Part shown: positions 6,736-47,013 of the stretch, piece after piece | How the letters are laid out: each line of letters opens with the position of its first letter | Position numbering within the stretch: position 1 is the stretch's first letter | Origin: Diplonema japonicum | Lineage: Eukaryota; Protista; Euglenozoa: Diplonemea | Length of the DNA stretch: 64,000 bases | Assembly: GCA_964019335.1 (NCBI GenBank) | Contig: OZ025709.1 | Location: forward strand, 310,001 to 374,000 | Direction of reading: 5' to 3' | Translations under genes and position numbers: made by a program | Notes under the pieces: generated by a model | What the model was told of the DNA's origin: nothing | The model's input: only the letters and a program-made list of their open reading frames with translations | Database searches by the model: none

Positions 6736-6796
6736 TTTCCCCCTCCCTTTTTTTTTTCCCTCTCTGATGTTTAGAACAAGAAAAAAAATGACTATT

Positions 6797-7400: not shown

Positions 7401-7401
<1 letters not shown>
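6797..7401. mobile_element. Non-autonomous hairpin + inverted-repeat element (Crypton/MITE-like)
   Basis: Palindromic block TATTAAATAAAAATCAG...CTGATTTTTATTTAATA (6797-6965) centred on CACGAGCGAAGCGAGTG, followed by a module bounded by ~40-bp inverted repeats (6969-7008 / 7363-7401). Confidence 0.6.
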
Positions 7402-7438
<37 letters not shown>

Positions 7439-7480
7439 AGACATTTAAGGGTACCTGCGGTATGTGGCAGGACACCTAAA
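7439..7480. repeat. ~42-bp dispersed repeat, second copy at 61031-61073
   Basis: AGACATTTAAGGGTACCTGCGGTATGT(G/A)GCAGGAC(A/G)CCT at both loci. Confidence 0.8.
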
Positions 7481-8504
7481 AAAAAAATATACGGGGGGGG
7501 GGAAAGGAAAAGAAAAAAGGGAGGTGGGTGGGAGGGAGAAGGAAAGTTAGGAAAGTAGAAAAAAAAAAAAAGGCGAGAGAAAGAATGAATGGAAAAAAAA
7601 GGGGGGGGAAGAACAATATAAAAAAGAAAGAAAGATGAGAGGAAACCATTTTTTTTTTTGTGTTTTTTTTTTTGTTTGGAAGAGAGGAAGATAAAAAAAA
7701 AAAATAAAGTGGGGAGAAGGGAAGAAAATGGAAAAAGGAAAAAAAGAGGGGTATTTTTTTTTTCTTTTCTTCTTCTTCTTTCTTGCCATGGGGCAGTATT
7801 GTAGGCAATGAGGCACACAAAGAGAACTAGGCGCACTTGGTGCACCTCTAATGGCAGAATTTCCTTCCCCTCTCCCCTCTTTTTTTTTTCTTTTCTTCTA
7901 AGGAGCCACAGGTGTGGGTAACAAAGATGAGTGAGACAAAGGGGGAAAGATAGAAATAAAAAAAAAGAGGGAGGGAGGAATAAAAAAAAAATAATTAAAA
8001 GAAAATAATAGGTATGAAAACAACCCACTCCGGGAGGAGTACCCTTTCTGGCGAAACAAAAAAAAAAGATCACATTTAAAAAAAGGGGGGGGGTGTTTTT
8101 CGGTTTTCGCAAGGATTGGAGGGGGGGGTGCCCCTCTCTTTGTATTCTTTTTTTTCTTTCTTCTTTCTAAAATACTTCTCTCCCCTCTCTTGTTTTTTTT
8201 TTTTTTTTTTCTTTCTTTTTTTTTTATCATGACGTCTCCGCGGTACATTTAATTAAAAAAAAGGAAACGAAAAAAAAAGGGGGGTAAGTTGGTGTAAGCA
8301 AGGGGATGAAAAAAAAAGGGAAGTGAAAGGAAAGTGGTACCTCCCCCGACTCTTCCCTTTCCCCCTTCTTAAAAAAAAATATCCAATGACACCAACTCTC
8401 TTATGAAATGGGGGGGGGGGGGGGGCGAATAAAGAGGGTAAAAAAAAAAAAAAAAAAAAAACACAGCCAAACATTATTGAATAACTACCTCTTTTTTTCT
8501 TCCC

Positions 8505-29804: not shown

Positions 29805-31355
29805 TCACGACAACCGGACCCTAGTTTTGTACGCCGGTGTCCCGAAGGAGCCCTGCTTGTAAAATTTCGACACCTCCATCGTGGGTTTGCGCACGGGGGC
29901 CAGCTCGAGCTCCTCGGAGGCTTCGCGCTCGGTGCGTATCTCACGCGTGATCGGGGTGACGAGACGTATCTGTGTTTGTTTCATTGTCATTCCCTTTTCC
30001 TGTCATACCTTTGCAAGATCTTCCTTGTACTGCTCAGCGGGCGGGAGTGGGTGCTGGAAGGTGGGTTCGGAGAAGGCGTGGAGAAGGACGGCAGCTTGGT
30101 TCGCCTGTTAACGAATGAAAGAAAGAAAAACATTTGCACACACCGCAGAAAGTCCTTGTAGCTGAGTCGCGTGCACGCATGCTTGCTTGCATGTTCTTTC
30201 TACGTTGTGTTTCACGTAGTCGACATCAAGCCCGTACCTTTCAGACCCGAAGAAGAAGCACATAGAGGTGTCTAAGTTGTCTTCCTCTCTTAGTTCATGC
30301 CAGATTTCGTGTGATGGAGACGAGTCCTCGATGTCCTCTGTGAGGGTTGCAGAGGTCAAGGGAAGCATGTTATGCCGCCTTATCATCCTGTTGACGATGC
30401 CCCAAGGATCGTCTCCTTCCTCTTCCCTGAGGGTGTGAAAAGCAGGGTACCCACCAGCTGTTACATGTGCGGCCATCGATGCACTTAGAACCTGGTCGGA
30501 GTAAGGGTCTATGCAGTCGCTGAGAATGATCGCGTCGCACCCTAGAACGGTTGCAGTTCTGATGAGGTTTCCAAGATGTTGTGGTTCGTGGATGCCGAGG
30601 AGAACGGCGGCCCGCTTGATAGGTGGTGCTTCTTCTACCCATAGGTTTGATTTAGCTTGTTCATCAGGGATGAAGTACTCGGCTGCCATTCCGCTGTGAT
30701 CCTTCCCCGCTGCAACTGACAGACACATTTTGTCAGCGAAAACCGTCGGGGTTTTCTCGAGATCGATCCCGGGGGGAGCGTTCACGTTCGGTTCAAGTAG
30801 AAGCATTTCAGGGAAGTATCCGTTGCTGGCTAGATTCGATATGGCGGACCCGTCTCGGAGAACGAAGCGTTCGTTCTTCGATCTGTACTTTGGGTTTTGT
30901 CGAAGCTTTAGAAAGTGGTCGATCACTTTTGCCTTTCGGTTCGTGATCATCGTGGATGCAACGGGCATGGAATCTGTAAGGTTTTCCCAGTTTACGGCGG
31001 ACTGCGTTTTACCCTTTCGAACCAACGGCTCCGACGAAGCGTACCTGTGCGCATCGTCATTGTTTATTATCTCAATCTCCCTGTTTTTCAACTTTCTCCA
31101 TGCTTTTGCTTTGTCAATCTCGTGCCGATCTGTGACCCCTTCCCCCATCCCACCGTAATACTCATGCGGTTTCACTTTGTTCCCCACAGCTCCCAAAACC
31201 GACGTTCCAGACGTCCACCCTCTCCCTTTCCACGTATTGCCCCTGTCGATCTTCCCAACCTGCGTTTCTTGGCTTCTCTCTGCTTCTTTTGTTTTTTCTT
31301 TGTAATAAGAAGGACGACTTCCAACCCGATACACAATTTGGGTGCCTTTCAACAT
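29805..31355 (-). CDS. SpoU/TrmH-family RNA methyltransferase (RNMTL1/MRM-like); 2 introns (30105-30143, 29970-30008)
   Basis: IHEPQHLGNLIRTA, FFFGSERYGL; splicing restores motif 3 QGLSA|ANQAAVLLHAF and joins ORF 29805-29990. Confidence 0.82.
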
Positions 31356-31375
31356 TGTCTGACCCTGGAAAAAAA

Positions 31376-31449
31376 TATTCCCATCCGGGTTCGAACCGGA
31401 GACCTTCGCCGTGTTAAGGCGACGTCATAACCAACTAGACCATGGGAAC
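31376..31449 (-). tRNA. tRNA-Val(AAC), copy 1
   Basis: GTTCCCA...TCGCC-TT-AAC-AC-GGCGA...GGTTCGAACCC...TGGGAATA followed by T-run. Confidence 0.95.
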
Positions 31450-31461
31450 TCACGCCCCGGG

Positions 31462-33059
31462 TTTTTTTTTTTTTTTTTCAAAATACCAATGCAGGGCCGC
31501 CATGGAGAGCAACACCTGAGAAAAGGGAAAAAAAGGTGAAGGGAAACCATGGGGAAATAGGGAGGGCAATGGACCAGGCTTCTGCAAGCAGGAGGAGCCC
31601 TGGTCCCCCACCAACCCGTGCTCTGCTTTGGGACAGCCGAAGAGGGCTGAATTACATTATTCCCTCAGTCAAGTGAGAGAAAAACGGGGGCCTACCTTCC
31701 AGCTGGATGTCCTTCTTTGGCTGGAACCTCCGGCGGAAAGCCCCCCAGGGAGGTATTGCTCCTATTGAGCGAATCATTGGTGAGTGTGAAAATAAAAAAA
31801 AGGGGAAATGGGAAACAGTGAGAGGAAGGTGAAGGAAGGGAAAGGAAAGTGGGAAACACAACATTCCATTTAACACACACACACGGGGCGATCCCTTAGC
31901 GCAGCACGGGGGCCGCGGGACCGGCGTCAAGAGAGACCGGAGGAGGAGGCGGCACGTTTGAAGGTGCAGTGACGTCTGTAGACGCCAGGGATGATGGCGA
32001 GGTGAACAGTCCGGAGCGTGACCAGGCGAGCAGGCCAGACTCAACAATGAGGTCGTAGATCTGGGTCACGCGTCTCGACAGGGAGAAGGCTAGGGAGGGA
32101 GTACCAGCAGGAGTGTCGATCGCCCCCCTCCCGATCACAGGGCACCCACCGACAACATGCTCCCTGGACATCGGTGCTGCGTGGCAGGCTGGGCACCGGA
32201 GCACACCCTTGTGCTTCCTGTTCGGGCCAGCAGTCTGCAGGAAGCCGAAGAAGAGAGCCGAGTGACCAATCCGCAGCCGCGAGATGACCGTTTCAGCTTG
32301 TCTGGGGAAGCCAAGGGGGAAGTGCGCAGACCGAAGCTCGGTCGCCACCGCGTAGTTGTGGGCGAGGGATGTTATGAGCTCCGCGGACCTCCGCACCACC
32401 CACCGTCGCACCAGGGCCCTCACTGATCGGTAGTCAAGGGAGGGCCTGTCCTGCTTCCGCTTCGTTCCCTCCCCGGCCAGAGCGTCAGCCTTCTCGTTCC
32501 CGTCCACCCCACAGTGGGAGGGCACAAACTGGAGGACCACCGGTGTCCCCTGCGTGCGCGCCGCGGACACCAGCCGGCTCCACGTCTGGTGGTCGAGCTT
32601 CTCCCTCTGTCGCGTTGGGCCAGCTCGCAGCTGCTCGACGAGGGAGAGGGAGTCGGTGCAGATCGACAGCGGGGACTTCGCCAGCGAAGGGTGTGTTTTT
32701 CGGAGGGTAGCCACCATATCCAGCGCCGTTTTCACAGCCATGCCCTCTGCCCGAAAAGATGAACAGAAGTCGTTGACGCCATGGCACACAGACACAGGGG
32801 TCAGGGGGGGAGGCAGCTGCAGATAAACCCCAGAGCCACCTTTCGCCTTCTGTCCGACCTGTACAACCGAGCCATCCGTGTAGGCATGGATGCCCGGGGG
32901 GAGAGCCGCAAGAGCAGCCTCGGCCGCCTTCCGCCTGTCCGCGTCTGGCGACGATCGCGTGACCCCGCCGGGGAGGTCAGTCCTGAAGTCGACCATGCCT
33001 GTCTGCCACGGGGCCGCCAGGGGCGTAGCCGACAGGTACTCGAAGTGCACCTTTGGTTC
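31462..33059 (-). mobile_element. 5'-truncated non-LTR retrotransposon, family A copy 1 (RNase H + CCHC + 3'UTR + poly(A))
   Basis: Near-identical to 33256-34875; T17 tail at 31462-31478; 11-bp TSD CACGCCCCGGG at 31451-31461 and 33060-33070. Confidence 0.93.
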
Positions 33060-33176
33060 CACGCCCCGGGCAGCCGGGTAAATGGCGGATCATTGTGTGA
33101 ATATTGCGATTGTAAGAAGATTGCTAATAACTCACACTGAGCAACAAAATAACCACGTGATGCACATGTACAAAAA

Positions 33177-33250
33177 TATTCCCATCCGGGTTCGAACCGG
33201 AGACCTTCGCCGTGTTAAGGCGACGTCATAACCAACTAGACCATGGGAAC
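33177..33250 (-). tRNA. tRNA-Val(AAC), copy 2
   Basis: Identical body to copy 1; different downstream flank. Confidence 0.95.
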
Positions 33251-33710
33251 TCACGTTTTTTTTTTTTTTTTTTTTTTTTTTTTCAAAATACCAATGCAGG
33301 GCCGCCATGGAGAGCAACACCTGAGAAAAGGGGAAAAAAAGGTGAAGGGAAACCATGGGGAAATAGGGAGGGCAATGGACCAGGCTTCTGCAAGCAGGAG
33401 GAGCCCTGGTCCCCCACCAACCCGTGCTCTGCTTTGGGACAGCCGAAGAGGGCTGAATTACATTATTCCCTCAGTCAAGTGAGAGAAAAACGGGGGCCTA
33501 CCTTCCAGCTGGATGTCCTTCTTTGGCTGGAACCTCCGGCGGAAAGCCCCCCAGGGAGGTATTGCTCCTATTGAGCGAATCATTGGTGAGTGTGAAAATA
33601 AAATAAAAAGGGGAAATGGGAAACAGTGAGAGGAAGGTGAAGGAAGGGAAAGGAAGGGAAAGGAAAGTGGAAAACACAACATTTCACTTTACACACACGC
33701 GGGCGATCCC

Positions 33711-36700
33711 TTAGCGCAGCACGGGGGCCGCGGGACCGGCGTCAAGAGAGACCGGAGGAGGGGGCGGCACGTTCGAAGGTGCAGTGACGTCTGTAGACGC
33801 CAGGGATGATGGCGAGGTGAACAGTCCGGAGCGTGACCAGGCGAGCAGGCCAGACTCAACAATGAGGTCGTAGATCTGGGTCACGCGTCTCGACAGGGAG
33901 AACGCTAGGGAGGGAGTACCAGCAGGAGTGTCGATCGCCCCCCTCCCGATCACAGGGCACCCACCGACAACATGCTCCCTGGACATCGGTGCTGCGTGGC
34001 AGGCTGGGCACCGGAGCACACCCTTGTGCTTCCTGTTCGGGCCAGCAGTCTGCAGGAAGCCGAAGAAGAGAGCCGAGTGACCAATCCGCAGCCGCGAGAT
34101 GACCGTTTCAGCTTGTCTGGGGAAGCCAAGGGGGAAGTGCGCAGACCGAAGCTCGGTCGCCACCGCGTGGTTGTGGGCGAGGGATGTTATGAGCTCCGCG
34201 GACCTCCGCACCACCCACCGTCGCACCAGGGCCCTCACTGATCGGTAGTCAAGGGAGGGCCTGTCCTGCTTCCGCTTCGTTCCCTCCCCGGCCAGAGCGT
34301 CAGCCTTCTCGTTCCCGTCCACCCCACAGTGGGAGGGCACAAACTGGAGGACCACCGGTGTCCCCTGCGTGCGCGCCGCGGACACCAGCCGGCTCCACGT
34401 CTGGTGGTCGAGCTTCTCCCTCTGTCGCGTTGGGCCAGCTCGCAGCTGCTCGACGAGGGAGAGGGAGTCGGTGCAGATCGACAGCGGGGACTTCGCCAGC
34501 GAAGGGTGTGTTTTTCGGAGGGTGGCCACCATATCCAGTGCCGTTTTCACAGCCATGCCCTCTGCCCGAAAGGATGAACAGAAGTCGTTGACGCCATGGC
34601 ACACAGACACAGGGGTCAGGGGGGGAGGCAGCTGCAGATAAACCCCAGAGCCACCTTTCGCCTTCTGTCCGACCTGTACAACCGAGCCATCCGTGTAGGC
34701 ATGGATGCCCGGGGGGAGAGCCGCAAGAGCAGCCTCGGCCGCCTTCCGCCTGTCCGCGTCTGGCGACGATCGCGTGACCCCGCCGGGGAGGTCAGTCCTG
34801 AAGTCGACCATGCCTGTCTGCCACGGGGCCGCCAGGGGCGTAGCCGACAGGTACTCGAAGTGCACCTTTGGTTCCAACCCGCATCGACGCAGTGCTTGGT
34901 AGCCAGAGCGCAGCCACCCACACCCCAGCCTGTTCGCCTGCTTCAGCTTGACCGTCTCCCTGTGAACCGGGGAAGACTGCCAGCAGAAGGCCTTCGCCGT
35001 CATCGTCGCCGCAGCACCCTCCGCCATTCTTTCGAGGGGAAGCAGTCCTGCCTCAGCTAGGAGCTTGTACCCTCCGGAGCCACTCCAGCAGCCCGTGATC
35101 AGCACCGCCGCCTCCTGGTGAAGCCCAGCCAGGTCCTTCCTCCCGACATCATCGAGCCTGCTGTAGTAGACCCCCATGCAGTAGCGCAGCAGCGGGAGGA
35201 TGTACGTAACGTAGAGAGACCGCAGAGTGTCCCTCTTGCTGCCCCAGGACGTGCCGGACAAGAGCTTCAGCACCCTCAGCCTTTTGCTGGCCCGCCGTAG
35301 GATGTCCTGTGCGTGTTCACCGAACGTGAGCCCAGAGTCCACCGTAACCCCAAGGTACCTCGCGTGTTCAGATAGAGGCAGGGGACGGGCCGCAACGTAA
35401 TCCACGTCGGGCCGTCGCACGGCTGCATGCATGTCCCGCACGCAGCGGATCCGCACACCACCCGCCTCCACAACCTGAAGGCCCGCCAGCTCCTGGTCCC
35501 CGGAGATCGTGCCATCGGCGTTCACCCCCAGGCCGAAGAGTGGGTTCTGGAAGGCACCTGGCTGAAGGGGGACTCGTGACGAAGTGAAGTAGACCCCGAG
35601 ACGTTTCTGGGGGGGGACGCAGACTGCCTGCGTCTTGGACGTGCTCAGCAGCATGTCACGCTCCCTGCACCAGTCCTCAACCGCATCCACCACTGCCTGC
35701 GCCTTCCGCTCCAGCCCAGCCACGTCCCCTTGTCCAGAGGAGATCACAACCGCCACGTCGTCGGCGTAGAGCACCGAGACATCCGCCAGTCCCTCCAGTC
35801 TCCTGGCGAGTTCGTCGACGTAGATGGTGTACAGGATGGGACCCAAGACAGAGCCCTGGGGGACACCCCGTCGCACCTTCGTCGTCGACCCCCTCGACCG
35901 TCCAATCGTGACCGCAGCAGTACGGCCGCATAGAAAGGACCGCGTCCACTCCACGAAGGGTTCGGGGAGACCCTTCCCTCGCATCTTGTCCAGCAGGGCA
36001 CCATGGGGCACCAGGTCGAAGGCAGAAGAGAAGTCGAACAGCAGAGCGGCCGAGAGACGTCGATCGTCTTTGTTCCTCGACATGCACTCAGTGAGGGTTG
36101 CCACCTGCTCCTCCGTGGAGCGGCCGCGTCTGAAACCAGCCTGGCTGTCGTGGAGTCCCTCGACTCCCGTCCCGTCCGCGTCAAGAAGAAACGTGAGCCT
36201 CTCCTCGATCATCCTCTCCAGCAGCTTGCAGAGGCAGCTGGTCAGGCAGATCGGCCGGTAGGAAGCCAAGAGAGTCGCATCTTTTCCAGGTTTCGGTACC
36301 GGGACGATCACTCCCTTCTTCCAGGCACCGGGGACGACACCCATCAGCCAGGAGCGATTGAGGAGTAGAAGGAGGACACCGAGGGAGTCCGAGTTCAGGT
36401 GTAGGAGCATCTCCGAGAAGATTCCGTCTTCCCCGGCCGCGCTGCGCGTCTTCATCCTTCTCAGGCCGCGGGTGAGGTCGTCCACGGTGAACGCTTGACA
36501 CCCGAGTCTGCTTGCAGAAGGAGCGGCGTCCTTCGAGTTCCCGTCACCACGCCTGCCGTAGAGCTTAGCGAAGTGCGCCCCCAGCCGGTCGGCCTTCGCC
36601 TTGTCCGACACAAATCTTCCCTCGAGTACAGGAAGGTGTGTCTTTCGGTGCCTGCCGTCCAGCTTCTTCACCGCTCTGAACGCAGCCCCGAGGTCCTTGC

Positions 36701-37862
36701 TCCGGCTGAGGTCGGCCGCCATCCTTCCCCATGCCTCACGCTTCGTCTCGTCAAGGAGTCGGTTGACTTCCTTCACCTTCGCCCTGTACTCCTCCACCAC
36801 CACGTCCGCCTCTTGAAGCAGGAGTTCGCGCAGGGTGTTCCGCTCTTCGAAGGCGTCCTCGAGCTCAGCAGTCCACCAGGGGGTCGGGCCACGTCGCATC
36901 CCACAGAGGGGAATGTGGTCGTTCGCCGCAGTCAAAAGGGCTTGTGTAAACCCCTTCGTGACAGAGTCAATCGGAGCCGCCGTGTCAACACCAGCAAGCA
37001 GGCGGGCAACAGCAGCAGTGTAGTCATCCCATCTGGCTTTTTTGAAATTCCAGGTGGGGAAGGGGCGCTCCGAACGGTAGACGTCCTCAAGAGGCAGGTG
37101 AAAGGATACGGGACTATGATCGGAGCCCCACGTGCCCAGCGTCTTCGGCTCAAGCTTCGCGCAGCGCCCCACAACCAGGTCCAGAACGTGTCGTGACGAG
37201 TCCCTCGTCGGTTCGTTGCGGTCGTTGTAGACGGTGTACCCGTGGGTGTCCAGCCAGTCCCTGACCACGTTCCCCCTCTCGTTCGGCGTCGTCACCGTGG
37301 CGTCCCAGGAGCTGTGGTGAGCATTGAAGTCACCCGCTATGACTGTGTTCTTCCCCATGGGAAGGCTGCCAGGCCGCAGGTACTCAGGGTCCCTCGTGCC
37401 TCTGCTCGCGCTTACCGGTGTAAGGTAAACGTTGGAGAGAGTGATCGGCTCACGCTTCTCGCAGGAGATCCTCACATCCAGTCTCTCAGTGACACAGTCC
37501 CCAGCCGGGAGTACGTGCGGAACCTCCTCCGAGGCAAGATCGTCGCGGACATACGTGACAATACCACCACCCCTCGTCGCAGTGCCGTCAGTCACCGGTG
37601 TCAACCGATCCCTCCTGTATGACCTGTACCCAGGCAGGTGTGGCGTGTCGTGCCCTTCCCTCAGGTGCGTCTCCTGTATCATGATGATGTCCAGCGACAA
37701 GAAGTCAGCATGGCGAGATACGACGGTCCATTTTGCAACGAGGCCGTTGCAGTTCCACGAGACAACCTTGAGACCCTTAGGCGACGGGGGCGGCAGCTTC
37801 TTGGGTGGGCCAGGGTTTGTTTCGACCAGCCCAAGCAGCCCCAACAGGTCCCTGACGGACAT
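33711..37862 (-). CDS. Family A ORF2: 2A-like peptide, AP endonuclease, reverse transcriptase, RNase H, CCHC finger
   Basis: SWNCNG/IQET/GDFNAHH/GSDH (APE); YRPICL, DFSSAFD, GVPQGSVLGP, YADD, YLGV (RT); YTDGS, AEG, TDS, FVPSHCGVDGNEKAD (RNase H); CPAC-x8-H-x4-C. Confidence 0.95.
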   Translation of the reverse strand: MSVRDLLGLLGLVETNPGPPKKLPPPSPKGLKVVSWNCNGLVAKWTVVSRHADFLSLDIIMIQETHLREGHDTPHLPGYRSYRRDRLTPVTDGTATRGGGIVTYVRDDLASEEVPHVLPAGDCVTERLDVRISCEKREPITLSNVYLTPVSASRGTRDPEYLRPGSLPMGKNTVIAGDFNAHHSSWDATVTTPNERGNVVRDWLDTHGYTVYNDRNEPTRDSSRHVLDLVVGRCAKLEPKTLGTWGSDHSPVSFHLPLEDVYRSERPFPTWNFKKARWDDYTAAVARLLAGVDTAAPIDSVTKGFTQALLTAANDHIPLCGMRRGPTPWWTAELEDAFEERNTLRELLLQEADVVVEEYRAKVKEVNRLLDETKREAWGRMAADLSRSKDLGAAFRAVKKLDGRHRKTHLPVLEGRFVSDKAKADRLGAHFAKLYGRRGDGNSKDAAPSASRLGCQAFTVDDLTRGLRRMKTRSAAGEDGIFSEMLLHLNSDSLGVLLLLLNRSWLMGVVPGAWKKGVIVPVPKPGKDATLLASYRPICLTSCLCKLLERMIEERLTFLLDADGTGVEGLHDSQAGFRRGRSTEEQVATLTECMSRNKDDRRLSAALLFDFSSAFDLVPHGALLDKMRGKGLPEPFVEWTRSFLCGRTAAVTIGRSRGSTTKVRRGVPQGSVLGPILYTIYVDELARRLEGLADVSVLYADDVAVVISSGQGDVAGLERKAQAVVDAVEDWCRERDMLLSTSKTQAVCVPPQKRLGVYFTSSRVPLQPGAFQNPLFGLGVNADGTISGDQELAGLQVVEAGGVRIRCVRDMHAAVRRPDVDYVAARPLPLSEHARYLGVTVDSGLTFGEHAQDILRRASKRLRVLKLLSGTSWGSKRDTLRSLYVTYILPLLRYCMGVYYSRLDDVGRKDLAGLHQEAAVLITGCWSGSGGYKLLAEAGLLPLERMAEGAAATMTAKAFCWQSSPVHRETVKLKQANRLGCGWLRSGYQALRRCGLEPKVHFEYLSATPLAAPWQTGMVDFRTDLPGGVTRSSPDADRRKAAEAALAALPPGIHAYTDGSVVQVGQKAKGGSGVYLQLPPPLTPVSVCHGVNDFCSSFRAEGMAVKTALDMVATLRKTHPSLAKSPLSICTDSLSLVEQLRAGPTRQREKLDHQTWSRLVSAARTQGTPVVLQFVPSHCGVDGNEKADALAGEGTKRKQDRPSLDYRSVRALVRRWVVRRSAELITSLAHNHAVATELRSAHFPLGFPRQAETVISRLRIGHSALFFGFLQTAGPNRKHKGVLRCPACHAAPMSREHVVGGCPVIGRGAIDTPAGTPSLAFSLSRRVTQIYDLIVESGLLAWSRSGLFTSPSSLASTDVTAPSNVPPPPPVSLDAGPAAPVLR

Positions 37863-38003
37863 CCTCCCGAGTAGGGTGGGGATCAGTGCAGAAAAGTCGG
37901 TGAAGAAACAGAGAGGTAGGAGTCTCCTGGGGAGGATGCGAGGGAGACTAGGAGAGGGAGCATGGTCGTAGATCTGCTGCTCCCCCTGTTCTGCGGGGCC
38001 CCT

Positions 38004-40850
38004 TCAATTGGATGGACCCATGGAGGCAGAGCGCCCCTTGACCCCATTGGTGAAGAGATCTTTGGTCTCCGCGAACGACCTGGCCCGCCCCCTCGTACCC
38101 AGGTTCGTCACCGCAGCCTCAGAGGTCGTAGCGAGAGGAGGAGCCCCCTTCTTCCCCTTCCCCTTCCCTTTCCAGACACTGTCGTGTGTCGTCGTCGCCC
38201 CCGGTGTAGGGTCCCGCGGCACTGCCGTTCCCGTCGTCAGCGTGGCCGCCTGCGGCAGGAGGAGGCGGAGCGTCGTCCGCAGATCGGAGATCATCTCCTG
38301 CTGAGAGTCGATCGTCCTCTGCAGCCCGACGATCGACTCCTTCAGCGTGGCGACGAGCTCAGTGAGAGCGGCGACCTCAGGCGACCCGGAAGGGACTCCC
38401 TCCTTGTTTCCCGCAGACACGTTGCGGGGCGGTGTAGGGGACGTCACAGTGTCGAGCTGGGGGGGAGCCACCGAGCTCGGTATGGACGCCCACGGGCTGG
38501 TGGGAGGAAGCCCAGTTGCTTTCACCGCAGGGCCAGTCTCCGAGGGTGTCGACGCCGATACAGGTGCCGGGTCAGGTACAGGTGTAGTAGGCGCAGGTGC
38601 AGGCACATGAGAAGATGTGGGTGCCGGGGTCGAGGACGTTGCAAGCGCAGGTGCAGATGCAGGTGTCGTCCTGTTGATGAGAGGGGGCGGCTTGACGGTC
38701 GGGTGGTCGTCCGCATCACGGAGGCAGACAAGGCGCCCCCCAAGGAGCCACGTCCTGGACTTCGGGGGCGGGCTGTCGACGACGATGAAGAACACGAGTT
38801 GCCTCGTGCCCTGGAACATCGTCTGCGTGCGTCGCAGGACGGAGGATGGTTTCCAACCGATGTGGTCCATCACTTCGTCGAAGGCCGCCCTGGTGATGGA
38901 CGGCGGGGCTCCGGTGAGCAAAAACTTGCGCTTCGTACGCAGTTTTGCGAGGGTTTCCCGGAGCCGCTGTTCCGTCTCCGGTAGGCACCGCACAGTCCAT
39001 CCCTTACGGTGCGCCACCCCGAGAGACAACCCACCCAGCGTCCCCGCAATCCGATAGGCATCCGCCCTCCCTTCCGCCACGATGGGTACATAAGCGTACC
39101 CCCCGCGTCTCTCCGTCGTCCGCATTAAGCACCCGTCCCCGGACCGGCGCAGGACGGCGTGGACGTGTGCTGCTTGCAGGCGCAGTCCCACCTCGTGGGT
39201 CCAGTGCCTCGCCCGCGGTTCCTCCTCACCGAACTTCCTTGGGCGGAAGACCGCACGATCCTCCACCACCGCGCCCTGAGCCTTGGCGAGCTCCAGGACC
39301 CTGGCCTTCGCCTCCTTCAGGCTGTCTGCACTGACACAGACGTAGACGACCTCCGATCCGCTGTTGAAGGTGGAAGGCGGGGTGTAGGTGGGGGGGTCCA
39401 GCCCGAACGTGGAGACGTGGACCCTCCTGTTCACTGCGCGCGACCCAGAGACCATGACAATCTCGCTGGGGGTGGTGACACCGGGGACCTCTGTCATAAG
39501 GACAAAGGTGATGGATGCCGTAGGTAACGCGGAGCACACGACCCCCATTCCGGAGGGATCGTCGAGCGCAATGACAGCGCGGGATGTTTCCGTCGGGGGG
39601 GACACGTTGGTGTAGATCGGGGCGTCCCATGTGTCTGGCACCAGGTCCCATCGCGGGGTTGTGGAAGGGGCAGGGGCAGGGTCGTCCTCCATCTCCTCAG
39701 GGCCAGAGCTGGTGTCAGAGTCTGAGCTGAGGAGGAGCGTGCCTTGGTCTGTTGACGCGTTGGCGGAAGCGTTCGCGACTGCTTCGTCCTCGACCTTCTG
39801 GGCATCTGCCTTCTTGGCGGCCGCCAACCTCAAAGCTTCCTCCTTTTTGGCAGCGGCTGCGGCGGCTTCCTTTTCGGCGGCGGCGGTGGCTGCGACCTTC
39901 TTCTTCTCCTCGGCGGCGGCGGCTGCGGCTGCGGTCTCCTTCTCGGCGGCGGCGGCTGCAGCTTGCTTCCTGGCGGCGTCGGCTGCGGCCTTCCTCTCGG
40001 CGGCGGCGGCGGCAGCGGCTTTCTTCTCGGCGGCGGCCTTCTCCTCGGCGGCGGCGGCCTTCTCCTCGGCGGCGGCGGCGGCTGCGGCTTTCTTCTTCTC
40101 GGCTGCAGCGGCTGCGGCTGTAGCCTTCTTCTCCTCGGCTGCTTTCATCTCGGCCGCAGCACGCGCAGCCTCCTTCTCCTCTGCCGCAAGTCGTGCAGTA
40201 GACCGCTCGCGCAGAGCCTTCTCCTCAGCCTCGACTGCTCTGCGAGCAGCCTCCACACCAGCCACGCGAGCAGCTTCCGTCTCGGCTGCCATTTTGACAA
40301 CCGCAGCATCAGCCACCTCCTGCGCAGCCTTCATCTTAGCAGCTATTTCTGCAGCTACCACGTCGGCCGACTCGCGTGCAGCTTCCAAATCAGCAGCGAT
40401 TCCCGCGAGTTCGACGTCGGCCGCAGTGCGTGCGGCTTCGAGGGGGTGTGTGGCGTCAGCTATGTGTGCGGCTTCGGCGGCAGCGTCAGCGCGCGCGGCT
40501 CTGGCGGCCTTCCTCCTAGCTTTTTTGCTGGAGGTCGGGGTGGCGACGCTGGCGTCAGGCGAAACCGGCCTTTTGACGGAGCCGGTCGGGGTGGAGGCGA
40601 CAGGTGTCGCTGGGCCGGCTGTAGCGGCGGCGGCGTCGGGCGTGAGGAGGTCAATTACGGTGACCACCCCCGTCATCTTCTCCCGGTGCTCCGGCGTCAG
40701 GAGCTGCCCCAGCTCCCCGGCTGCTCCCGCGCTGCGGAGCATCCTCTCCACCCGCCGCTCCTCCCTGGCCTTGGACTGCGCCAGCTGCGTGCTGGCCCCG
40801 TTCCCTTCCGGCTTTGCCTTCTCCTTGTGCTTGTCTTTCTTCTTGCCCAT
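38004..40850 (-). CDS. Family A ORF1 (Ala/Glu/Lys helical repeat, central conserved domain with RRM-like segment, Pro/Thr linker, C-terminal coiled coil)
   Basis: 948-aa intact ORF upstream of ORF2; central region homologous to ORF 45057-46466. Confidence 0.85.
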   Translation of the reverse strand: MGKKKDKHKEKAKPEGNGASTQLAQSKAREERRVERMLRSAGAAGELGQLLTPEHREKMTGVVTVIDLLTPDAAAATAGPATPVASTPTGSVKRPVSPDASVATPTSSKKARRKAARAARADAAAEAAHIADATHPLEAARTAADVELAGIAADLEAARESADVVAAEIAAKMKAAQEVADAAVVKMAAETEAARVAGVEAARRAVEAEEKALRERSTARLAAEEKEAARAAAEMKAAEEKKATAAAAAAEKKKAAAAAAAEEKAAAAEEKAAAEKKAAAAAAAERKAAADAARKQAAAAAAEKETAAAAAAAEEKKKVAATAAAEKEAAAAAAKKEEALRLAAAKKADAQKVEDEAVANASANASTDQGTLLLSSDSDTSSGPEEMEDDPAPAPSTTPRWDLVPDTWDAPIYTNVSPPTETSRAVIALDDPSGMGVVCSALPTASITFVLMTEVPGVTTPSEIVMVSGSRAVNRRVHVSTFGLDPPTYTPPSTFNSGSEVVYVCVSADSLKEAKARVLELAKAQGAVVEDRAVFRPRKFGEEEPRARHWTHEVGLRLQAAHVHAVLRRSGDGCLMRTTERRGGYAYVPIVAEGRADAYRIAGTLGGLSLGVAHRKGWTVRCLPETEQRLRETLAKLRTKRKFLLTGAPPSITRAAFDEVMDHIGWKPSSVLRRTQTMFQGTRQLVFFIVVDSPPPKSRTWLLGGRLVCLRDADDHPTVKPPPLINRTTPASAPALATSSTPAPTSSHVPAPAPTTPVPDPAPVSASTPSETGPAVKATGLPPTSPWASIPSSVAPPQLDTVTSPTPPRNVSAGNKEGVPSGSPEVAALTELVATLKESIVGLQRTIDSQQEMISDLRTTLRLLLPQAATLTTGTAVPRDPTPGATTTHDSVWKGKGKGKKGAPPLATTSEAAVTNLGTRGRARSFAETKDLFTNGVKGRSASMGPSN

Positions 40851-41196
40851 TTTTCTTTTCTTTTCTTTTCTTTCCTTTCTTTTCTTTCACGTTTCTTTTC
40901 TTTTCTTTCCTTTCTTTTCTTTCACGTTTTTTTTTGCAATAATAACCACTGGGGGGAAACTGGGGGTGGGGGGAGGGGTGGGCCAGTCTTTTGTCTGGAG
41001 TAACCGAGAGGGCCACCACGGGGCTGAACCTTCCCTTCGGTGCTCCGTTCCCCCTTCCTGGGACAGCCGACCTGGCTGATTACATTCGGGGCGGTCCCCT
41101 CGAGGCTGAACGCAGGGGCGTTCTCTTGCTGCGCCCTGCGCCCTCCCGGCCTTCCCTGTGGCTGCCTCCCGGGAGGTTGTTTCTTGGCCCATTTGC

Positions 41197-41247
<51 letters not shown>

Positions 41248-41295
41248 GGGGGGACAAAGGGGTAGGGGGGGGGGGGGTCTATAATGGGCTCACGA

Positions 41296-44200
41296 TCACC
41301 CTTGTGCTGCGTCGGCCGGGGGGAAGATCCCACACTCAGACCATGATAAGAGCCCGGAGGCCTCGATGAAGGCGCAGACCTCGGCGGAGTGCTTGGAAAG
41401 CAGCGCGCGGAGCGGCAGCCCAGTGTCGTAGAAGGACTTAGCTGTGGGAGCCAGAGAATGACAGCCCCTCAGCAGGTGATCAGCGTCGAGCGGTGATTGA
41501 ACGTTGCAGGCGGGGCAGGTGAGGTGATGACTCCCCTCAGCCCTCAGGGGTCCCTTGAGCTGGAGGTACCCCCTCATCAAAGGCGTGTGTCCGGTCCGGA
41601 GCCGAATGATCAGGACCTCATCCCTCCTACTGAGTGGTGGGAGAGAGAGACATTCGCCACCGGTGACGAGGCGGTGGTGGCCGGGGGAGTCGCTGTTATA
41701 TCTCGCACGCGACCTTCCTCTCAGCCACGCTTTTATGGCCGCCTTGCTGGAGCGGTAGCTAACCCCGCAAGGCGACTTCGACAGCCCGTCCCTGGCCGCT
41801 CCGTCGGCGAGCTCGTTCCCCGTCACACCGCAGTGGGAGGGGATGTACCAGAAGTGCACATCACCAGAGCGTTTGGCCCTGAGCCAGGAAGCGGCATCCC
41901 AGATCCGTCTGTCCGTGGACTCCCTCTGCTGTCCGGGGCCTCCAGCGAGCCTCCGCAGCATCGTCTGTGAGTCGGTCAGCAGGTAGAGAGGGCGGCCCCT
42001 CAGGTTCACGACCGTTTTGTACACCTCCGCAGCCTCCTTCAACCCCATCAGGATAGCGGTGCCCTCGGCGCACATGGGTGTGGAGACCATGCCGGCCCCG
42101 TGAGAGGTGGTAAGGGTGAGGTCCATGTCGGGGACTCTGAGGGCAACCCCAGCCCCCCCTCTCCCCCTTATCACCGAGCCGTCCGTGTACACTACCAGAG
42201 CGCCGCTTGGGATCTCGTCCAGCTTTTCCGCAGCCGCTGCCGCCCTCACATCGTCGGGGAGTGTCCTCCTGGTGTCGGTGGCGTAGGGATCGACGTGGAT
42301 GCCTTCCGCCCAGGGGGGGGCTCTCGTATCAGGCCCTAGCGGTAGGGAAGCAACCGCACTCAGCCCAGAACTCCTCGTCGCCTTCAGCGCTCCCAAGGCC
42401 CATCCTGCGGTAGCTGCACCCCTGACCACCCTGTTCACCGGGGTTCCCACCCACCTCAGTGCCCTCTGCAGTAGAATGGCAGAAGCAGGTACAAGGACCT
42501 GAGTGATGCTGCGGAACTGCCCCAGGACGAGCCGGAGAGGAGCCGCAGTATGCGAATTCGTTTGTCGTATCTCTCGATGATGTCGCGGGCATGGGCACCG
42601 AAAGACAAGTCAGCGTCAAGGATGACCCCTAGATACTTGGCCCTATCACGCCTCGCGACGGGGACGGCCGTGGAGAATTCATACACCAGCCCTTTGGAGA
42701 CGAGTGCAGAGACGTCGCGTCGTGTCGTGGCCGTGCGGTTAACGGACAGGAGCCTCCTCCCGATCAGGTGAGTAGGTCCCCCGGCGATGAGTCGGCCCTT
42801 GAGCTCCAGCGGCTGGAATTCGAAGCCCGGATGCGTCGCCCCGGTCGAGGGGAAGTAGACGTGGAAGTCGTACGGTTCGCATTTGGGGGTGGGGACGTAC
42901 AGCGTCTTCTCCCTGCTCAACTGCATCCCCCATCGTGTACACCAGTCTTCGACTGCACCCACTACCGCCGTGGCCCTGGCCTCGAGCTCAGTCCTTGTTG
43001 TGGCAGAGACTACTACCGCGACGTCGTCCGCGTAGATCGTGGAGAGCCCAGCCAGACCCTCAAGTTCCCTCGCTAGGTCGTCCACGAAGATGGTGAACAG
43101 CACTGGACCGAGTACAGAACCTTGAGGCACGCCACTCTTGATTTTGTAAGGGGTCCCCTTGACACCCTCCACGACTACCCTCGCTGTTCTGGACGTTAGG
43201 AAGGAGGAAACCCACCTGGTGTAGGCCGTAGGGAAGCGCTTCTGAGACATCTTCTGAATGAGTGCCTCGTGGTTGACCCTGTCGAACGCCTTTGAGAAGT
43301 CAAAGAGTATGGTGAGGCATGCCTCCTTAACTTCGGCGTTCCTTTTTATCGTCACATGCTGCACGATGGCGGCAACCTGCTCCTCGGTGGACCTCCCTTT
43401 CCTGAAGCCAGCCTGGGCGGGGTGAAGTCCCTCTACCATCGTTGTCGGGGAGTCAAGTAGATACGTCACGCGGGCCTCGACCATCCTTTCCATGAGCTTG
43501 CCGAGGCAGCTCGTCAGGCTGATGGGGCGGTAGGACTCAATCTTCGTGGGGTCTTTGCCCGGCTTCGGGATCGGGACGACTAGTGCCAGTTTCCACGTGT
43601 CCGGAACTTGCCCGCTCGCCCAGGAGAGATTGAACAGCTGTAGAACGATTCTCAGGGATTCCCTACCCAGACGCATCAGCATCACGTTGAAGATTCCATC
43701 GTCGCCTGCAGCACTCTTCGTTCTCGTCCTGAGCAATTGTCTCAGCAGTTCGTCCATCGTGAAGTAGCCCGTTCCGCCCTCGTAGGGTTCCTGCGTCTGT
43801 CCTGTTGTGTCGAGACCAGGGACAGTGTCGTCTCCGCAGATCGTCTCGTAGTAGCGTCCGAGACGATCGGCCCTAGCCTTGTTGCCTGTGAGAAGAGCGT
43901 CGCCGTGTTGAAGGGGGGGGCATCGGTGGCCTCCATGACCTGCCGTCGAGCTCCTTGACTGCCTTGAATGCCGCAGGCAAGTTCTTGGAGGAGCTGAACT
44001 TGGAGCAGAGGCTCCTCCATGACTTCTCTTTGGATGCCTTCACCGTCTCGTTGACTGCATTGTTGAGCCCAGCGAGCCCTGCGTGATCTTCGGATTCCCC
44101 CCTGAGGATGGCGTCTCTGAGGGTGTCCCTTTCTTCAAAGGTCGTGTCCAGTTCGCTGTTCCACCATGGCTTCCTCTCGGTGAAACACCCGTGCCGAGGT

Positions 44201-45054
44201 ATGTGCCTTGTTGCGGCTTCGCTCAGGGCTTCTTGGATCCTCTTGGCGAAGGTCGTGACCTGTTTGCATCCGTCCAGCCCTCGAAGCCTCCCGTCTACAA
44301 AGTTCTGGAACGCTTCCCAGTCTGCCTTCCGGTAGTTGTACAACTCAGGCGTGTATGCTCTCCTAGTCGGCCTCAGTAGGGGGACCTCGAATTGAAGGGG
44401 TGTGTGGTCAGAGCCCCAGGAACCCAAGTGGCAAGGCGTCCTGGGTTCCCATTTATCCTTGCTGAGGATCAGGTCAAGGACAGACCTGCTCCCTCCTCTC
44501 GTCCACGTGTGGCGGTCCGGTCTGTTCCATAGCACGAAGTTCTTGTTCTCCATCCATTCCCATACGGTCCAGCCCCTGTCGTTAGCTTTCGCAGCATGGT
44601 CCCAGCTTGAGTGGTGGGCGTTGAAGTCACCGCAGGCGATGTAGTCGTCTTCTTGGGGAAGGTCGGCCAGCTGGAGGGTCTGACCGCCTCTGGGCGGCAG
44701 GTAGAAGTTGCAGATGACCGCTTTGGAACTGTCACACCTGATTTCGACATCGAGCCTTTCCACGTCTTCGGAGACAACACAAACCACCTCGCGAGCCTGA
44801 AGGTCCTTCTTGACCAGGGTGACAAGTCCACCTCCCCTCCCACTGCCAGCCTGGGCGGTTCGGTCCTTCCTGAAGACTTGGTACCCCAGAGCCTGGAATT
44901 CGTCAGCTTGCACCAGCTTCGTTTCCTGAATGGCGATGACGTCCAGTTCCCTCTTTCTCGCTTGGTGAAGCAGCGTCGTCGTTTTGGCACCCCTTATCGA
45001 GTTACAGTTCCACGTGACAACTCGGAGGGGGCGAAGGGACCCCACAGGGCCCAT
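41296..45054 (-). pseudogene. Family B ORF2 (APE-RT-RNase H-CCHC), disrupted
   Basis: TWNCNS, GDFNAHH, GVPQGSVLGP, YADD, YTDGS, YIPSHCGVTGNELAD, CPAC..H..C. One +1 frameshift in the G8 run 43913-43920 and a frameshifting deletion of roughly 65 codons near 42487 relative to family A. Confidence 0.88.
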
Positions 45055-45056
45055 GG

Positions 45057-46466
45057 CTAACACCTTTTGGGGACAGCGACCAGGCGCCGTTTCTTCTTCC
45101 CCGAGGGCGTCTTTGGTGAGCCTGGGGGCTTAGCGCTTGTCTGTTTGGACTCCGACGGGCCCCCCTTCAGCAGTATCGCGAGAACCTGCCTCACGACCTC
45201 CTCCACGAACTCCGCACTGAATTCGGAGGTCGGGTTCTCCCGCTTGGTCCCGGAGGGGGCGCTGCCCTTTGCTTTGCTGCCCGTGGTCTTCTTCTTTCCC
45301 TTCGGGTCGGGTGTGGAGGGTGCGTTCCTGACCACCTCGGCAGCTGTCCTTCCTTTGGTAGGGGGAGTGGTCTGGTGGGCCTCCTGCTGTTCCTTCTTCT
45401 TCTCGGGATGTGCCTTCTCCTTCTTCGGGAGGGTCCGGACAAAGGCCTCCGGGAAGCTGCCTTTAGCGTGGCACCTCAGGAGCCTGTCCCCGTATTGGAA
45501 GATCGGGAACGGCGGGGGCTCTGAGGCGACAACCTGCAGGAACATGACCTTTTTGCCATCAACCCTGGCGTACCTCCTGCCCACCACCCTGGCATTCCAG
45601 CCCATGTCCTTCGGGATCACGTCCGCTTCCTCCTGGTAGACGTGGCCGGGGACACCCTCCAAGACGTACTTCTGGGACATCGTCACATCGATGTCGCATG
45701 AAGCGAGTGCCTCTTGGAGTTCGGCTGTGTCACCGGAGGCGCACCTGATCGCCCACCCTCCCTTGACCGACATGACACCTAGGGCGGGTCCACCAGCCTT
45801 GAGCGCCATCTGGAACGCCTCGCCGATGGTGGATGCCGGAACAGGTACCGCCTCGGTCGGAAGCGTGTGCCTTGGGACCTCGATCAGGTAGCCATCCCCA
45901 GACTTGCGGAGGAGTGCGTGGAGGCTGGTCGTCCGCACCCTCATGCCGACCTTGTGCGAGAGGGTGTTGGGGCCCCTTCTGCTCAGAGGTACAGGGGCGT
46001 CTCGGCTGGGGAACACGGCTGTTTCCTTCAGGCCTGTTTCGACCTTCCTCCCGTGAGCGAGAGCCGTCTTCCTCGCCTCGTCCATTGAGTCAGCCTTGAC
46101 CCTCATGTAGAGGACGGCCTCGGTGGCTGCTGTCGCTTGTACCGCCTTTGGGGCTGCATACTTCGGGGGGGAGGAACCGTTGCCTGTCAGTTCGACAAGG
46201 TGCAGGGTTTTGATACCTTGCTTTGTGAACAAGGTGGCGGACGACGACCCGGCGAAGGCCTTCATGGAGAGCACGGTCCAAGACCCGTGTGCGGCGGTGT
46301 GGTATTTGAGGAAGACCTCGGGATTCGTCGTGAGGATGACGCCTCGGGTTTTGCCCTCCGTCTTCGACGGGTGGACCACTTCTCCGTCCCAGTGCTCAGG
46401 AACCAGCGTGATTCGCTTCTCCCAGGAGGCTGTAGCCTGGGGTACCTCGTCAGTGCTCGTAGGCAC
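45057..46466 (-). CDS. Family B ORF1, N-terminally incomplete
   Basis: LVPEHWD, HKVGMRVRTTSLHALLRKSGDG, KYVLEGVP align with A ORF1 LVPDTWD, HEVGLRLQAAHVHAVLRRSGDG, KFLLTGAP; no ATG start. Confidence 0.75.
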   Translation of the reverse strand: MPTSTDEVPQATASWEKRITLVPEHWDGEVVHPSKTEGKTRGVILTTNPEVFLKYHTAAHGSWTVLSMKAFAGSSSATLFTKQGIKTLHLVELTGNGSSPPKYAAPKAVQATAATEAVLYMRVKADSMDEARKTALAHGRKVETGLKETAVFPSRDAPVPLSRRGPNTLSHKVGMRVRTTSLHALLRKSGDGYLIEVPRHTLPTEAVPVPASTIGEAFQMALKAGGPALGVMSVKGGWAIRCASGDTAELQEALASCDIDVTMSQKYVLEGVPGHVYQEEADVIPKDMGWNARVVGRRYARVDGKKVMFLQVVASEPPPFPIFQYGDRLLRCHAKGSFPEAFVRTLPKKEKAHPEKKKEQQEAHQTTPPTKGRTAAEVVRNAPSTPDPKGKKKTTGSKAKGSAPSGTKRENPTSEFSAEFVEEVVRQVLAILLKGGPSESKQTSAKPPGSPKTPSGKKKRRLVAVPKRC

Positions 46467-46562
46467 ACCGGCACGGAGGCATCCCCTTCAGCTGGTTTTG
46501 TTGGGCTGTGGAGCCTTTGGAAAATAAAAATGTAAGGAAAACATAACCAGGCTAACCCGGGC

Positions 46563-46726
46563 TTTTTTTTTTTTTTTTTTTTTTTTCAAAATACCAATAG
46601 GTGCCATGGGGGAGCAACACCTGGGAAGGGGAAAGGTGAAGGGAAGCATGGAAATATTACAGGGAGGGCGAAGACCAGTTCTTCTGCAATCAGATGGAGC
46701 TGTGGACTCCGCCAACCCGTGCCCTA
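46563..46726 (-). mobile_element. Short 3'-terminal fragment of a diverged family-A-like element (C)
   Basis: T24 + CAAAATACCAAT...GGAGCAACACCTG...CCAACCCGTGC, similar to the A 3' end; flanked by CCCGGGC (46556-46562) and CACGTCCCGGGC (46727-46738). Confidence 0.85.
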
Positions 46727-47013
46727 CACGTCCCGGGCAGCCGCGTAACTGGCGAATGTCGATGCACGTACGGTGGTAGCAATAAATAAATACTAAAAAG
46801 GAAAAAAAAAAACCAACTCCAATCCAATCAAACTTAAAGTTACCTTCTTTTTTTTTTTTTTTTTTTCCACTTCCTTTTCGACTTGCTAAGGCCGTACCCA
46901 CTAGGTGGGTTGGAAGTGTCTCGAGACGCTCACTCGGTTGCCCGAGTACTCATGACCGTGCTGGTGTTCTCTACCCACAAGCTTTGCTGGTTGTTTGGCA
47001 TTTTTTTTCTAAG

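Follow-up and report, generated by a model that had tools for sequence, protein, structure and literature searches.

Retrotransposons without long terminal repeats (non-LTR elements) that target tRNA genes are known in the literature consulted only from social amoebae; TRE5, TRE3, NLTR-B, and NLTR-A were all described from dictyostelids (PMC5911963, PMC5006619). NLTR-A of Dictyostelium purpureum, which combines apurinic/apyrimidinic endonuclease (APE), reverse transcriptase (RT), and RNase H domains, lies 2 to 6 bp upstream of where the mature tRNA begins (Spaller et al. 2016, PMC5006619). NLTR-B is found 39 to 64 bp upstream of tRNA genes, TRE5 ∼40 to 54 bp upstream in the opposite orientation, and TRE3 40 to 150 bp downstream (PMC5911963, PMC5006619). 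In TRE5-A, the protein of open reading frame 1 (ORF1p) binds TFIIIB and integration is B-box dependent, while Ty3 integrates at the RNA polymerase III (Pol III) start site (PMC5911963). Here, we analyzed long interspersed nuclear elements (LINEs) in front of two tRNA-Val(AAC) genes of the diplonemid Diplonema japonicum (Euglenozoa). The genes lie in a 64,000-nucleotide (nt) stretch of the assembly GCA_964019335.1 (contig OZ025709.1, positions 310,001 to 374,000, forward strand), which is referred to here as the window (C62:310001-374000) and is numbered from its first nucleotide. We conclude that related APE-RT-RNase H families, no fewer than five in number (A, A2, B, E, and F), very probably integrate by position just upstream of any tRNA gene. 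The initial annotation of the window had taken these elements for an undescribed kind, which they are not, given the published NLTR-A, TRE5/TRE3, and NLTR-B (PMC5006619, PMC5911963). With NLTR-A and TRE5/TRE3 of dictyostelids as precedents, the kind of element is not categorically new; the host supergroup is.

The assembly (62.5 Mb; 132 contigs) was searched, and the upstream regions of the 63 best-scoring tRNA genes were fetched; these loci held 65 distinct tRNA genes. A retroelement 3′ end was present within ∼17 nt upstream of 23 of them (35%). By family, A occupied 9 genes, B 4, A2 3, F 3, E 2 to 3, and F2 1. The poly(A) or (TTA)n end always pointed toward the tRNA, in the same orientation, and left the tRNA gene intact, and none of the 65 genes had an insertion in the opposite orientation. 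Across 43 junctions, the spacer that separates the tail from tRNA position +1 had a median of 5 nt (range, 1 to 17 nt), with peaks at 4 to 6 nt (25 junctions) and 11 to 13 nt (7 junctions). The junctions cover at least 22 anticodon classes. The targeted tRNAs include His, Val(AAC), Val(CAC), Arg, Gln, Trp, Pro, Cys, Ile, Gly, Asp, Leu, Glu, and intron-containing Tyr, at which the distance from the tRNA 5′ end is also kept; Lys, Phe, and Thr are further isotypes targeted by the same families. The spacers are diverse native flanks with no common motif required, and because their sequences vary between sites, targeting follows position and not sequence.

The same association emerged when the element ends served as the starting point. 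Family A has 126 3′ ends in the genome (pattern search; control, 0), and family B has ∼45 related ends that are 96 to 98% identical. We read 67 ends (41 distinct A and 26 B) with flanks of 1.5 kb. A co-oriented tRNA gene lay within 20 nt downstream of 16 of the 41 A ends and 9 of the 26 B ends (25 of 67 together), and five more ends reached a tRNA within 1.5 kb through a stack of elements. With at most ∼1,600 tRNA candidates in the genome, a 20-nt co-oriented window amounts to ∼0.03% of strand positions, and the association of A and B ends with tRNA genes is thus far above chance. At least 30 of the 36 ends without a tRNA in the flank directly adjoined another repeated retroelement (A 5′ ends, truncated A, LINE-like coding sequence, or multicopy sequence). 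Such ends appear to be older members of stacks. Position-specific targeting of tRNA genes in general is therefore established as well as sequence alone can establish it.

Two other accounts of this distribution were considered. The first, put forward in the initial annotation, was a specificity for tRNA-Val; a variant would be recognition of the local sequence CCCGGG(A/G)CGTG. Such a preference fits the window, where three insertions (truncated A, C, and B; see below) cut the same CCCGGG-containing flank, and it fits the tRNA-Val(AAC) genes genome-wide, of which there are eight and four are occupied. The other four are empty, however, including one (C65:490715) whose related flank runs uninterrupted into the gene (...CCCCGGCGTGA, then GTTCCC). 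Moreover, the occupied tRNA-Val(AAC) genes elsewhere have a different flank, CAGCGGTCGTAA, and the same families stand before at least 22 anticodon classes with unrelated spacers. The genome-wide junctions refute both the Val-specific and the CCCGGG-specific readings, to which we assign practically no chance.

The second account is random insertion followed by selection, in which only harmless tRNA-adjacent copies survive in a compact genome. The flanks of tRNA genes are classic safe sites, and the genome is fairly gene-dense. Selection cannot, however, give a precision of 1 to 17 nt, 23 of 65 genes with co-oriented insertions against 0 of 65 with opposite ones, or repeated hits at the same gene, and the A copies (99 to 100% identical) leave little time for purging. 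We regard this account as very unlikely and retain integration by position.

The window illustrates the arrangement at two neighboring genes. Five tRNA genes were detected in it by ARAGORN. Two of these are tRNA-Val(AAC) genes of identical sequence, copy 1 (31376 to 31449) and copy 2 (33177 to 33250), both intact, both on the minus strand like all features of the locus described below, and both scoring 60.3 bits against Rfam tRNA in a local scan, although a gathering-threshold scan over the whole window lost them to its filters; a T-run terminator follows copy 1. Much of what the initial annotation had said of these genes was borne out by direct reading of the minus strand: LINE poly(A) ends lie 5 to 12 nt upstream of the intact tRNAs, each of the four insertions shares the orientation of its tRNA and has the poly(A) end toward the gene, and the Arg, Gln, and Ile tRNA genes of the window have no insertion in front. 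These three empty genes simply belong to the ∼65% of tRNA genes that are unoccupied.

Copy 1 is preceded by a 5′-truncated family-A LINE (31462 to 33059) that is 98.3% identical to A positions 6060 to 7669, i.e., the last 1.6 kb of A. It comprises the RNase H part of ORF2 (Pfam RNase_H match in ORF 31896 to 33062), the C terminus, the 3′ untranslated region (UTR), and a 17-nt poly(A). The initial annotation had described a target site duplication (TSD) at −12 to −2 from the tRNA, and this was seen: the 11-nt 3′ copy, cccggggcgtg, occupies 31451 to 31461 and is separated from the tRNA by a single a at 31450. The 5′ copy (33060 to 33070) forms the end of the native upstream flank of copy 1 (33060 to 33088; ccgccatttacccggctg followed by cccggggcgtg). 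A spacer of ∼90 nt separates this flank from tRNA-Val copy 2.

Copy 2 carries a stack of three elements. Directly upstream of the tRNA, at positions −5 to −1, is the 5-nt 3′ TSD copy cgtga (33251 to 33255) of a full-length family-A LINE of ∼7.7 kb (33256 to 40921), which was recognized by Pfam, translations, and a EukProt match and ends in ...ggtattttga(A)29; its 5′ TSD copy is at 40922 to 40926. Next follows a family-B LINE of ∼5.6 kb (40927 to 46555), identified by Pfam, its frame changes, and the ∼45 related 3′ ends in the genome. Its 3′ end, read on the minus strand, is ...cagtggttattattgc(A)9, also written ...gtggttattattgc(A)9. Beyond B lies gcccggg (46556 to 46562), read as the remnant of a 3′ TSD copy that belongs to fragment C and was cut by the later B insertion. 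Fragment C itself (46563 to 46726) is a 164-nt 3′ end of subfamily A2, ending in ...ggtattttga(A)24; it is 79% identical to the A 3′ end and 97 to 98% identical to A2 copies (L100, L101, and L116). The last feature is the displaced native flank of copy 2 (46727 to 46754), cgccagttacgcggctgcccgggacgtg, which consists of cgccagttacgcggct and gcccgggacgtg. Its last 12 nt, gcccgggacgtg (46738 to 46727), are the 5′ TSD copy of C and originally stood at positions −13 to −2. For this stack, the order A, B, C and the junctions given in the initial annotation held, while C turned out to belong to subfamily A2 and B to have no recognizable TSD.

The upstream flanks of copies 1 and 2 agree at 25 of 28 positions, in line with the earlier claim that the flank above C is a displaced native one, and the pre-insertion site can therefore be reconstructed. 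On this site, B would have entered the 3′ TSD copy of C between gcccggg and acgtga. Insertion in the order C, then B, then A, as first proposed, is the most economical reading, and it fits the identity and frameshift proxies of age. A is probably the youngest, with an identity to other copies of up to 100% over 1.6 kb and an ORF2 that exactly matches a transcript, and B is probably older than A, because it is 96 to 98% identical to its relatives and has a frameshifted ORF2. An insertion of A before B would need sequence-specific recognition 7.7 kb from the tRNA, and the genome-wide data speak against such recognition. At the 5′ junction of A (40887 to 40926, minus strand), we observed a 35-bp tandem duplication in which cgtga plus 30 nt of the purine-rich 5′ UTR occurs twice, so that the TSD is present twice upstream of A. 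The duplication could be due to replication slippage or be the remnant of an earlier A copy.

A stack of this kind might also be an assembly artefact or the product of segmental duplication or repeat recombination. The Logan contigs of four public runs (X1, X3, X4, and X5), examined over 30500 to 34500, break at every repeat edge, with no spanning contig and no empty-allele joint, and the 35-bp duplication shows that some local rearrangement has taken place. Against this, the junctions each have their own TSD logic and together rebuild a flank paralogous to that of copy 1, the three stacked elements come from different families, stacks of like build are present at many loci spread over many contigs, and runs from three studies confirm the unique flank as far as the first nucleotide of tRNA-Val copy 1. 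We regard either origin of the stack as very unlikely. The ratio of summed contig depth between the A element and the unique flank over the same region varied widely (∼3 to 6× in X4, ∼130 to 200× in X5, and ∼350× in X1), a spread that may reflect differences in copy number or data type between samples labeled as the same organism. When the stack and 20 stack loci were scanned with Rfam, tRNAs were the only hits.

TSDs were also seen at other loci. Including those of the window, most were 5 to 12 nt long, e.g., tacctcaaaca (11 nt; L003) and tccgtc (6 nt; L013), and a few reached into the gene: ttaacagcac (10 nt; L049) ends 4 nt inside the tRNA, a 22-nt TSD (L053) extends to +15 of a tRNA-like gene, and one of ∼44 nt (L037) consists of tccgta and positions 1 to 38 of tRNA-Asp. 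All TSDs seen begin at the poly(A) junction and extend at least as far as ∼2 nt from the tRNA start, some of them past it. Because they bound the insertion and not the tRNA, the tRNA is the target and not the cargo. A 3′ transduction of tRNAs was judged unlikely.

The TSDs, 5′ truncations, poly(A) tails, and template-switch chimeras (see below) are the marks of target-primed reverse transcription (TPRT), and we propose that integration occurs by TPRT at the Pol III initiation region of any tRNA gene. The first nick would fall 1 to 17 nt upstream on the strand complementary to the tRNA, which serves Pol III as the template, where the poly(A) tail would be primed, and the second would fall at or just inside the tRNA 5′ end. 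The 3′ TSD copy re-creates an intact target, such that a newcomer lands between the tRNA and the earlier element. Restoration of the target in this manner accounts for the repeated use of sites and for head-to-tail stacks in which the youngest element adjoins the tRNA. Given the unrelated spacers and the use of all isotypes, including intron-containing tRNA-Tyr, the site is most likely read via a protein contact with TFIIIB, TFIIIC, and Pol III, which form a complex on the A and B boxes. This contact might be made by ORF2p or by a lineage-specific ORF1 core domain common to A and B.

The main rival to tethering by the Pol III complex is that the tRNA gene DNA itself is recognized, e.g., that the A-box region or the melted initiation bubble is read by a DNA-binding surface of the element or by its endonuclease, with nicking at a set distance upstream. 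The A box (+8 to +19) is common to all tRNA genes; intron-containing tRNA-Tyr, whose B box is further off, is targeted at the same 6 to 7 nt; and a degenerate tRNA-like gene that retains an A box is targeted as well (L053). The native flanks are also relevant here. In the 46 unoccupied tRNA upstream regions (L061 to L120), positions −25 to −21 are AT-rich and −20 to −11 GC-rich, often with CACNCCC, followed by A-rich positions at −8 and −7, T at −6, and, in 65% of the genes, A at −1. This ordered region is probably the Pol III promoter/start-site signature of the organism, and the A-run that often stands at −8 and −7, with T after it at −6, coincides in position with the commonest junction. 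However, sites without the A-run are also used (e.g., ctg/cccgggg in the window), ORF1 and ORF2 revealed no DNA-binding domain apart from APE and a C-terminal Cys/His motif, and the known cases TRE5-A, Ty3, and Ty1 all use protein contacts (PMC5911963). We hold direct DNA recognition to be rather unlikely and favor a protein contact with the Pol III complex.

Several points weigh against the reading of position-specific integration or against parts of it. The inner copy at L025 and the copy at L044 are without a clear TSD, as is B in the window, whose junctions were read directly. The stack junctions are spanned by no independent read, the short-read contigs ending at repeats. Some identical junctions, such as that of B with the spacer gcatc at two tRNA-Ile genes, are possibly segmental duplicates. 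The sample consists of 65 tRNA genes and 67 element ends, with stacks followed within the 1.5-kb flanks, and the proposed contact with TFIIIB or Pol III is drawn from analogy.

Both A and B matched Pfam Exo_endo_phos, RVT_1, and RNase_H, and the initial assignment to APE-RT-RNase H LINEs was therefore correct. A has a purine-rich 5′ UTR of ∼35 nt and two intact ORFs joined by an in-frame linker. ORF1 (38004 to 40850; 948 amino acids [aa]) matched no Pfam family, and ORF2 (33711 to 37862; 1,383 aa) starts with the 2A-like motif LLGLVETNPGP and ends, after APE, RT, and RNase H, with the Cys/His motif. ORF2 is 100% identical to a transcript-derived protein in EukProt. This exact match, the intact ORFs, and the identity of the 40 scored genomic copies (99 to 100%) suggest that family A is probably still active. 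In B, ORF1 is at 45057 to 46466, and ORF2 is spread over three frames by two frameshifts (APE, 43873 to 45063; RT, 42456 to 43757; RNase H, 41296 to 42450). A and B are 67 to 69% identical in nucleotide sequence in the RT region, and their proteins are 46% (RT), 38% (APE), and 33% (C-terminal part) identical. Compared with the ORF2 C terminus of A, that of A2 is 66% identical, those of families E and F are 38 to 42% identical, and that of the L041 family is 34% identical. The tails of E and F are of the (TTA)n or (ATT)n type.

The ORF1 proteins of A and B have a common core of ∼320 aa (28% identity; E = 5e−25). A phmmer search with this core against 1.84 billion representatives matched only the protein itself, Pfam gave no match, and the ESM Atlas gave no usable match; an AlphaFold2 model built from three sequences had a pLDDT of 47. 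In an RT tree that consisted of unnamed environmental, arthropod, and diplonemid sequences only, A, B, and a transcriptome protein of Diplonema ambulator (P0002) formed a clade (support, 99/99), in which P0002 was sister to B (92/82). The 2A-like NPGP motif occurs in A, in the D. ambulator relative, and in one further family. No named LINE clade was among the hits of two word-based protein searches. We infer that A, A2, B, E, F, and the L041 family form a guild of related LINEs in which the tRNA habit is clade-wide, and the position of the D. ambulator protein in the A/B clade suggests that the habit is old within diplonemids. Among 80 metagenome relatives (21 to 34% identity), none had a tRNA after the 3′ end, but their contigs end at or near the element.

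A more far-reaching version of the proposal would combine several of these features. The clade would be old and diplonemid-wide, and the orphan ORF1 core would be a new adaptor that docks the element on the Pol III preinitiation complex, with the first nick on the template strand at the transcription start. An insertion shifts the native upstream elements kilobases away from the gene, and the AT-rich tail of the element takes their place; the AT-rich 3′ ends (tattttga(A)n, ttattattgc(A)n, and (tta)n) would stand in for the displaced TATA-like element and preserve the function of the tRNA gene. In Discoba, the targeting of tRNA genes would then have arisen independently of the known cases and be mechanistically distinct from them. 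As a whole, this version is speculative, and we consider it doubtful.

Among described elements, the present ones behave most like NLTR-A, a comparison of behavior in which sequence kinship has no part. By its published description, NLTR-A likewise has ORF1 and an APE-RT-RNase H ORF2, and its window of 2 to 6 bp corresponds to the main peak of 4 to 6 nt found here. In contrast to NLTR-A, with its amoebozoan host, the present elements have a wider range (1 to 17 nt) with a second peak at 11 to 13 nt, belong to several diverged families, occupy ∼35% of tRNA genes, and commonly form stacks. TRE5-A and TRE3 of D. discoideum are also APE-type non-LTR elements that are position specific at tRNA genes of all isotypes and occupy a large share of them (61% in D. 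discoideum, compared with ∼35% here). They have a zinc finger in place of RNase H, whereas the elements of D. japonicum have RNase H and are inserted 1 to 17 nt upstream and co-oriented. Several hallmarks of tRNA-targeting non-LTR elements as a class (APE and RT, a poly(A)-type tail, an isotype-independent position, and a TSD-bounded insertion) were found in the present elements, and those particular to TRE5 (its distance, opposite orientation, and zinc finger without RNase H) were not.

Ty3 of Saccharomyces cerevisiae and DGLT-A of Dictyostelium resemble the present elements in lying a few bases from the Pol III start of tRNA genes, which stay functional in these systems. They are LTR retrotransposons with a TFIIIB-bound integrase, whereas TPRT and an APE nuclease would be at work here; A and B have no integrase domain and end in poly(A). 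The ingi and L1Tc elements share with the present ones euglenozoan hosts, the APE-RT-RNase H domains, and a C-terminal Cys/His motif. The L1Tc polyprotein reportedly has an N-terminal 2A-like NPGP peptide as well. The APE-RT-RNase H order together with an N-terminal 2A-like peptide is present here, a combination that also occurs in other LINE clades and is not diagnostic. To our knowledge, ingi and L1Tc are not tRNA associated. No named ingi or L1Tc protein was among the sequence hits of the two word-based protein searches, and the present elements differ from ingi/L1Tc in their ∼35-nt purine-rich 5′ UTR, which lacks a long conserved 5′ signature.

The elements described here would extend the strategy of a safe haven at Pol III genes to Euglenozoa, a group with polycistronic Pol II genes and a different use of intergenic space. 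How an APE-type LINE without an integrase finds a position instead of a sequence is poorly understood. A second, unrelated host lineage would offer a natural comparative system, with several diverged families, an apparently active member, a clear TSD geometry, and a conserved orphan ORF1 domain. In the genome paper of Diplonema papillatum, LINE-like genes are abundant and tRNA genes number 211, but no link between the two is described, and a thorough analysis of transposons is left for later (PMC10161547). We found no report of tRNA-targeting LINEs for diplonemids or other Euglenozoa in the literature searched. The elements account for part of the repeat structure around tRNA genes, and their annotation should precede any interpretation of this genome's tRNA gene counts, pseudo-tRNAs, and dispersed 5S copies.

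Many short A copies begin no more than ∼30 nt past the ORF2 stop codon (A position 7225), with starts at 7255 (L013, L037, and L046), 7229 and 7238 (L017), 7246 (L057), and 7285 (L015). This suggests a nonautonomous subfamily of ∼430 nt that consists of the 3′ UTR only and resembles short interspersed nuclear elements, rather than a set of separate truncations. The idea that Pol III transcribes the element was considered and rejected on account of runs of T4-5 inside A. The 3′ ends of A, A2, B, E, and F follow a common pattern of a polypyrimidine tract, AG, (T)GG, and an AT-rich stretch before the tail, e.g., ...ttttctcag/gtgttgc...ggtattttga and ...ttccccccag/tggttattattgc (window positions 33262 to 33320 and 40936 to 40990; L086 and L115). 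The pattern resembles a trans-splice acceptor and places a TATA-like sequence ∼25 to 40 nt before the tRNA. At the 5′ edge of some stacked elements (L021 and L016; X3 loose end 32628), a sequence of ∼70 nt recurs, gggaggtcgtctc...cctcgagaccc...ggtgggtgggatc; it may be a candidate for a ribozyme like that of hepatitis delta virus, and it had no Rfam match at the gathering threshold.

Chimeras of small RNAs and LINEs were seen at three loci (L049, L010, and L005). At L049 (C55:224220-224338), a complete 5S rRNA is fused to a truncated B with a 10-nt TSD at tRNA-Val(CAC). At other 5′ junctions, a 3′ fragment of 5S precedes the 5′ end of another family, and a truncated A is joined to the first 45 nt of tRNA-Arg(ACG). 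Such chimeras look as if the reverse transcriptase had switched templates, in which case some dispersed 5S copies would be retro-copies. In one further case (G000:C52:247047-247080), the poly(A) tail of an A element is separated by 8 nt (tcaaggaa) from a co-oriented 5S rRNA sequence downstream, which could be a second type of Pol III target or an additional chimera within a stack. Long T-runs stand in front of several other 5S copies.

None of the U6 genes examined was directly targeted. At L032 (C109:9715-10016), a U6 small nuclear RNA gene lies ∼127 nt downstream of a co-oriented tRNA-Asp gene, with a B element 4 nt before the tRNA-Asp. Next to the stack in the window, a protein-kinase ORF (47066 to 47905, minus strand) begins 30 nt downstream of the tRNA-Ile gene (47939 to 48011, minus strand) and matches Pfam Pkinase only from profile position 113. 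Because the match lacks the first part of the profile, an N-terminal exon must lie beyond the tRNA-Ile gene, and this gene may sit in an intron.

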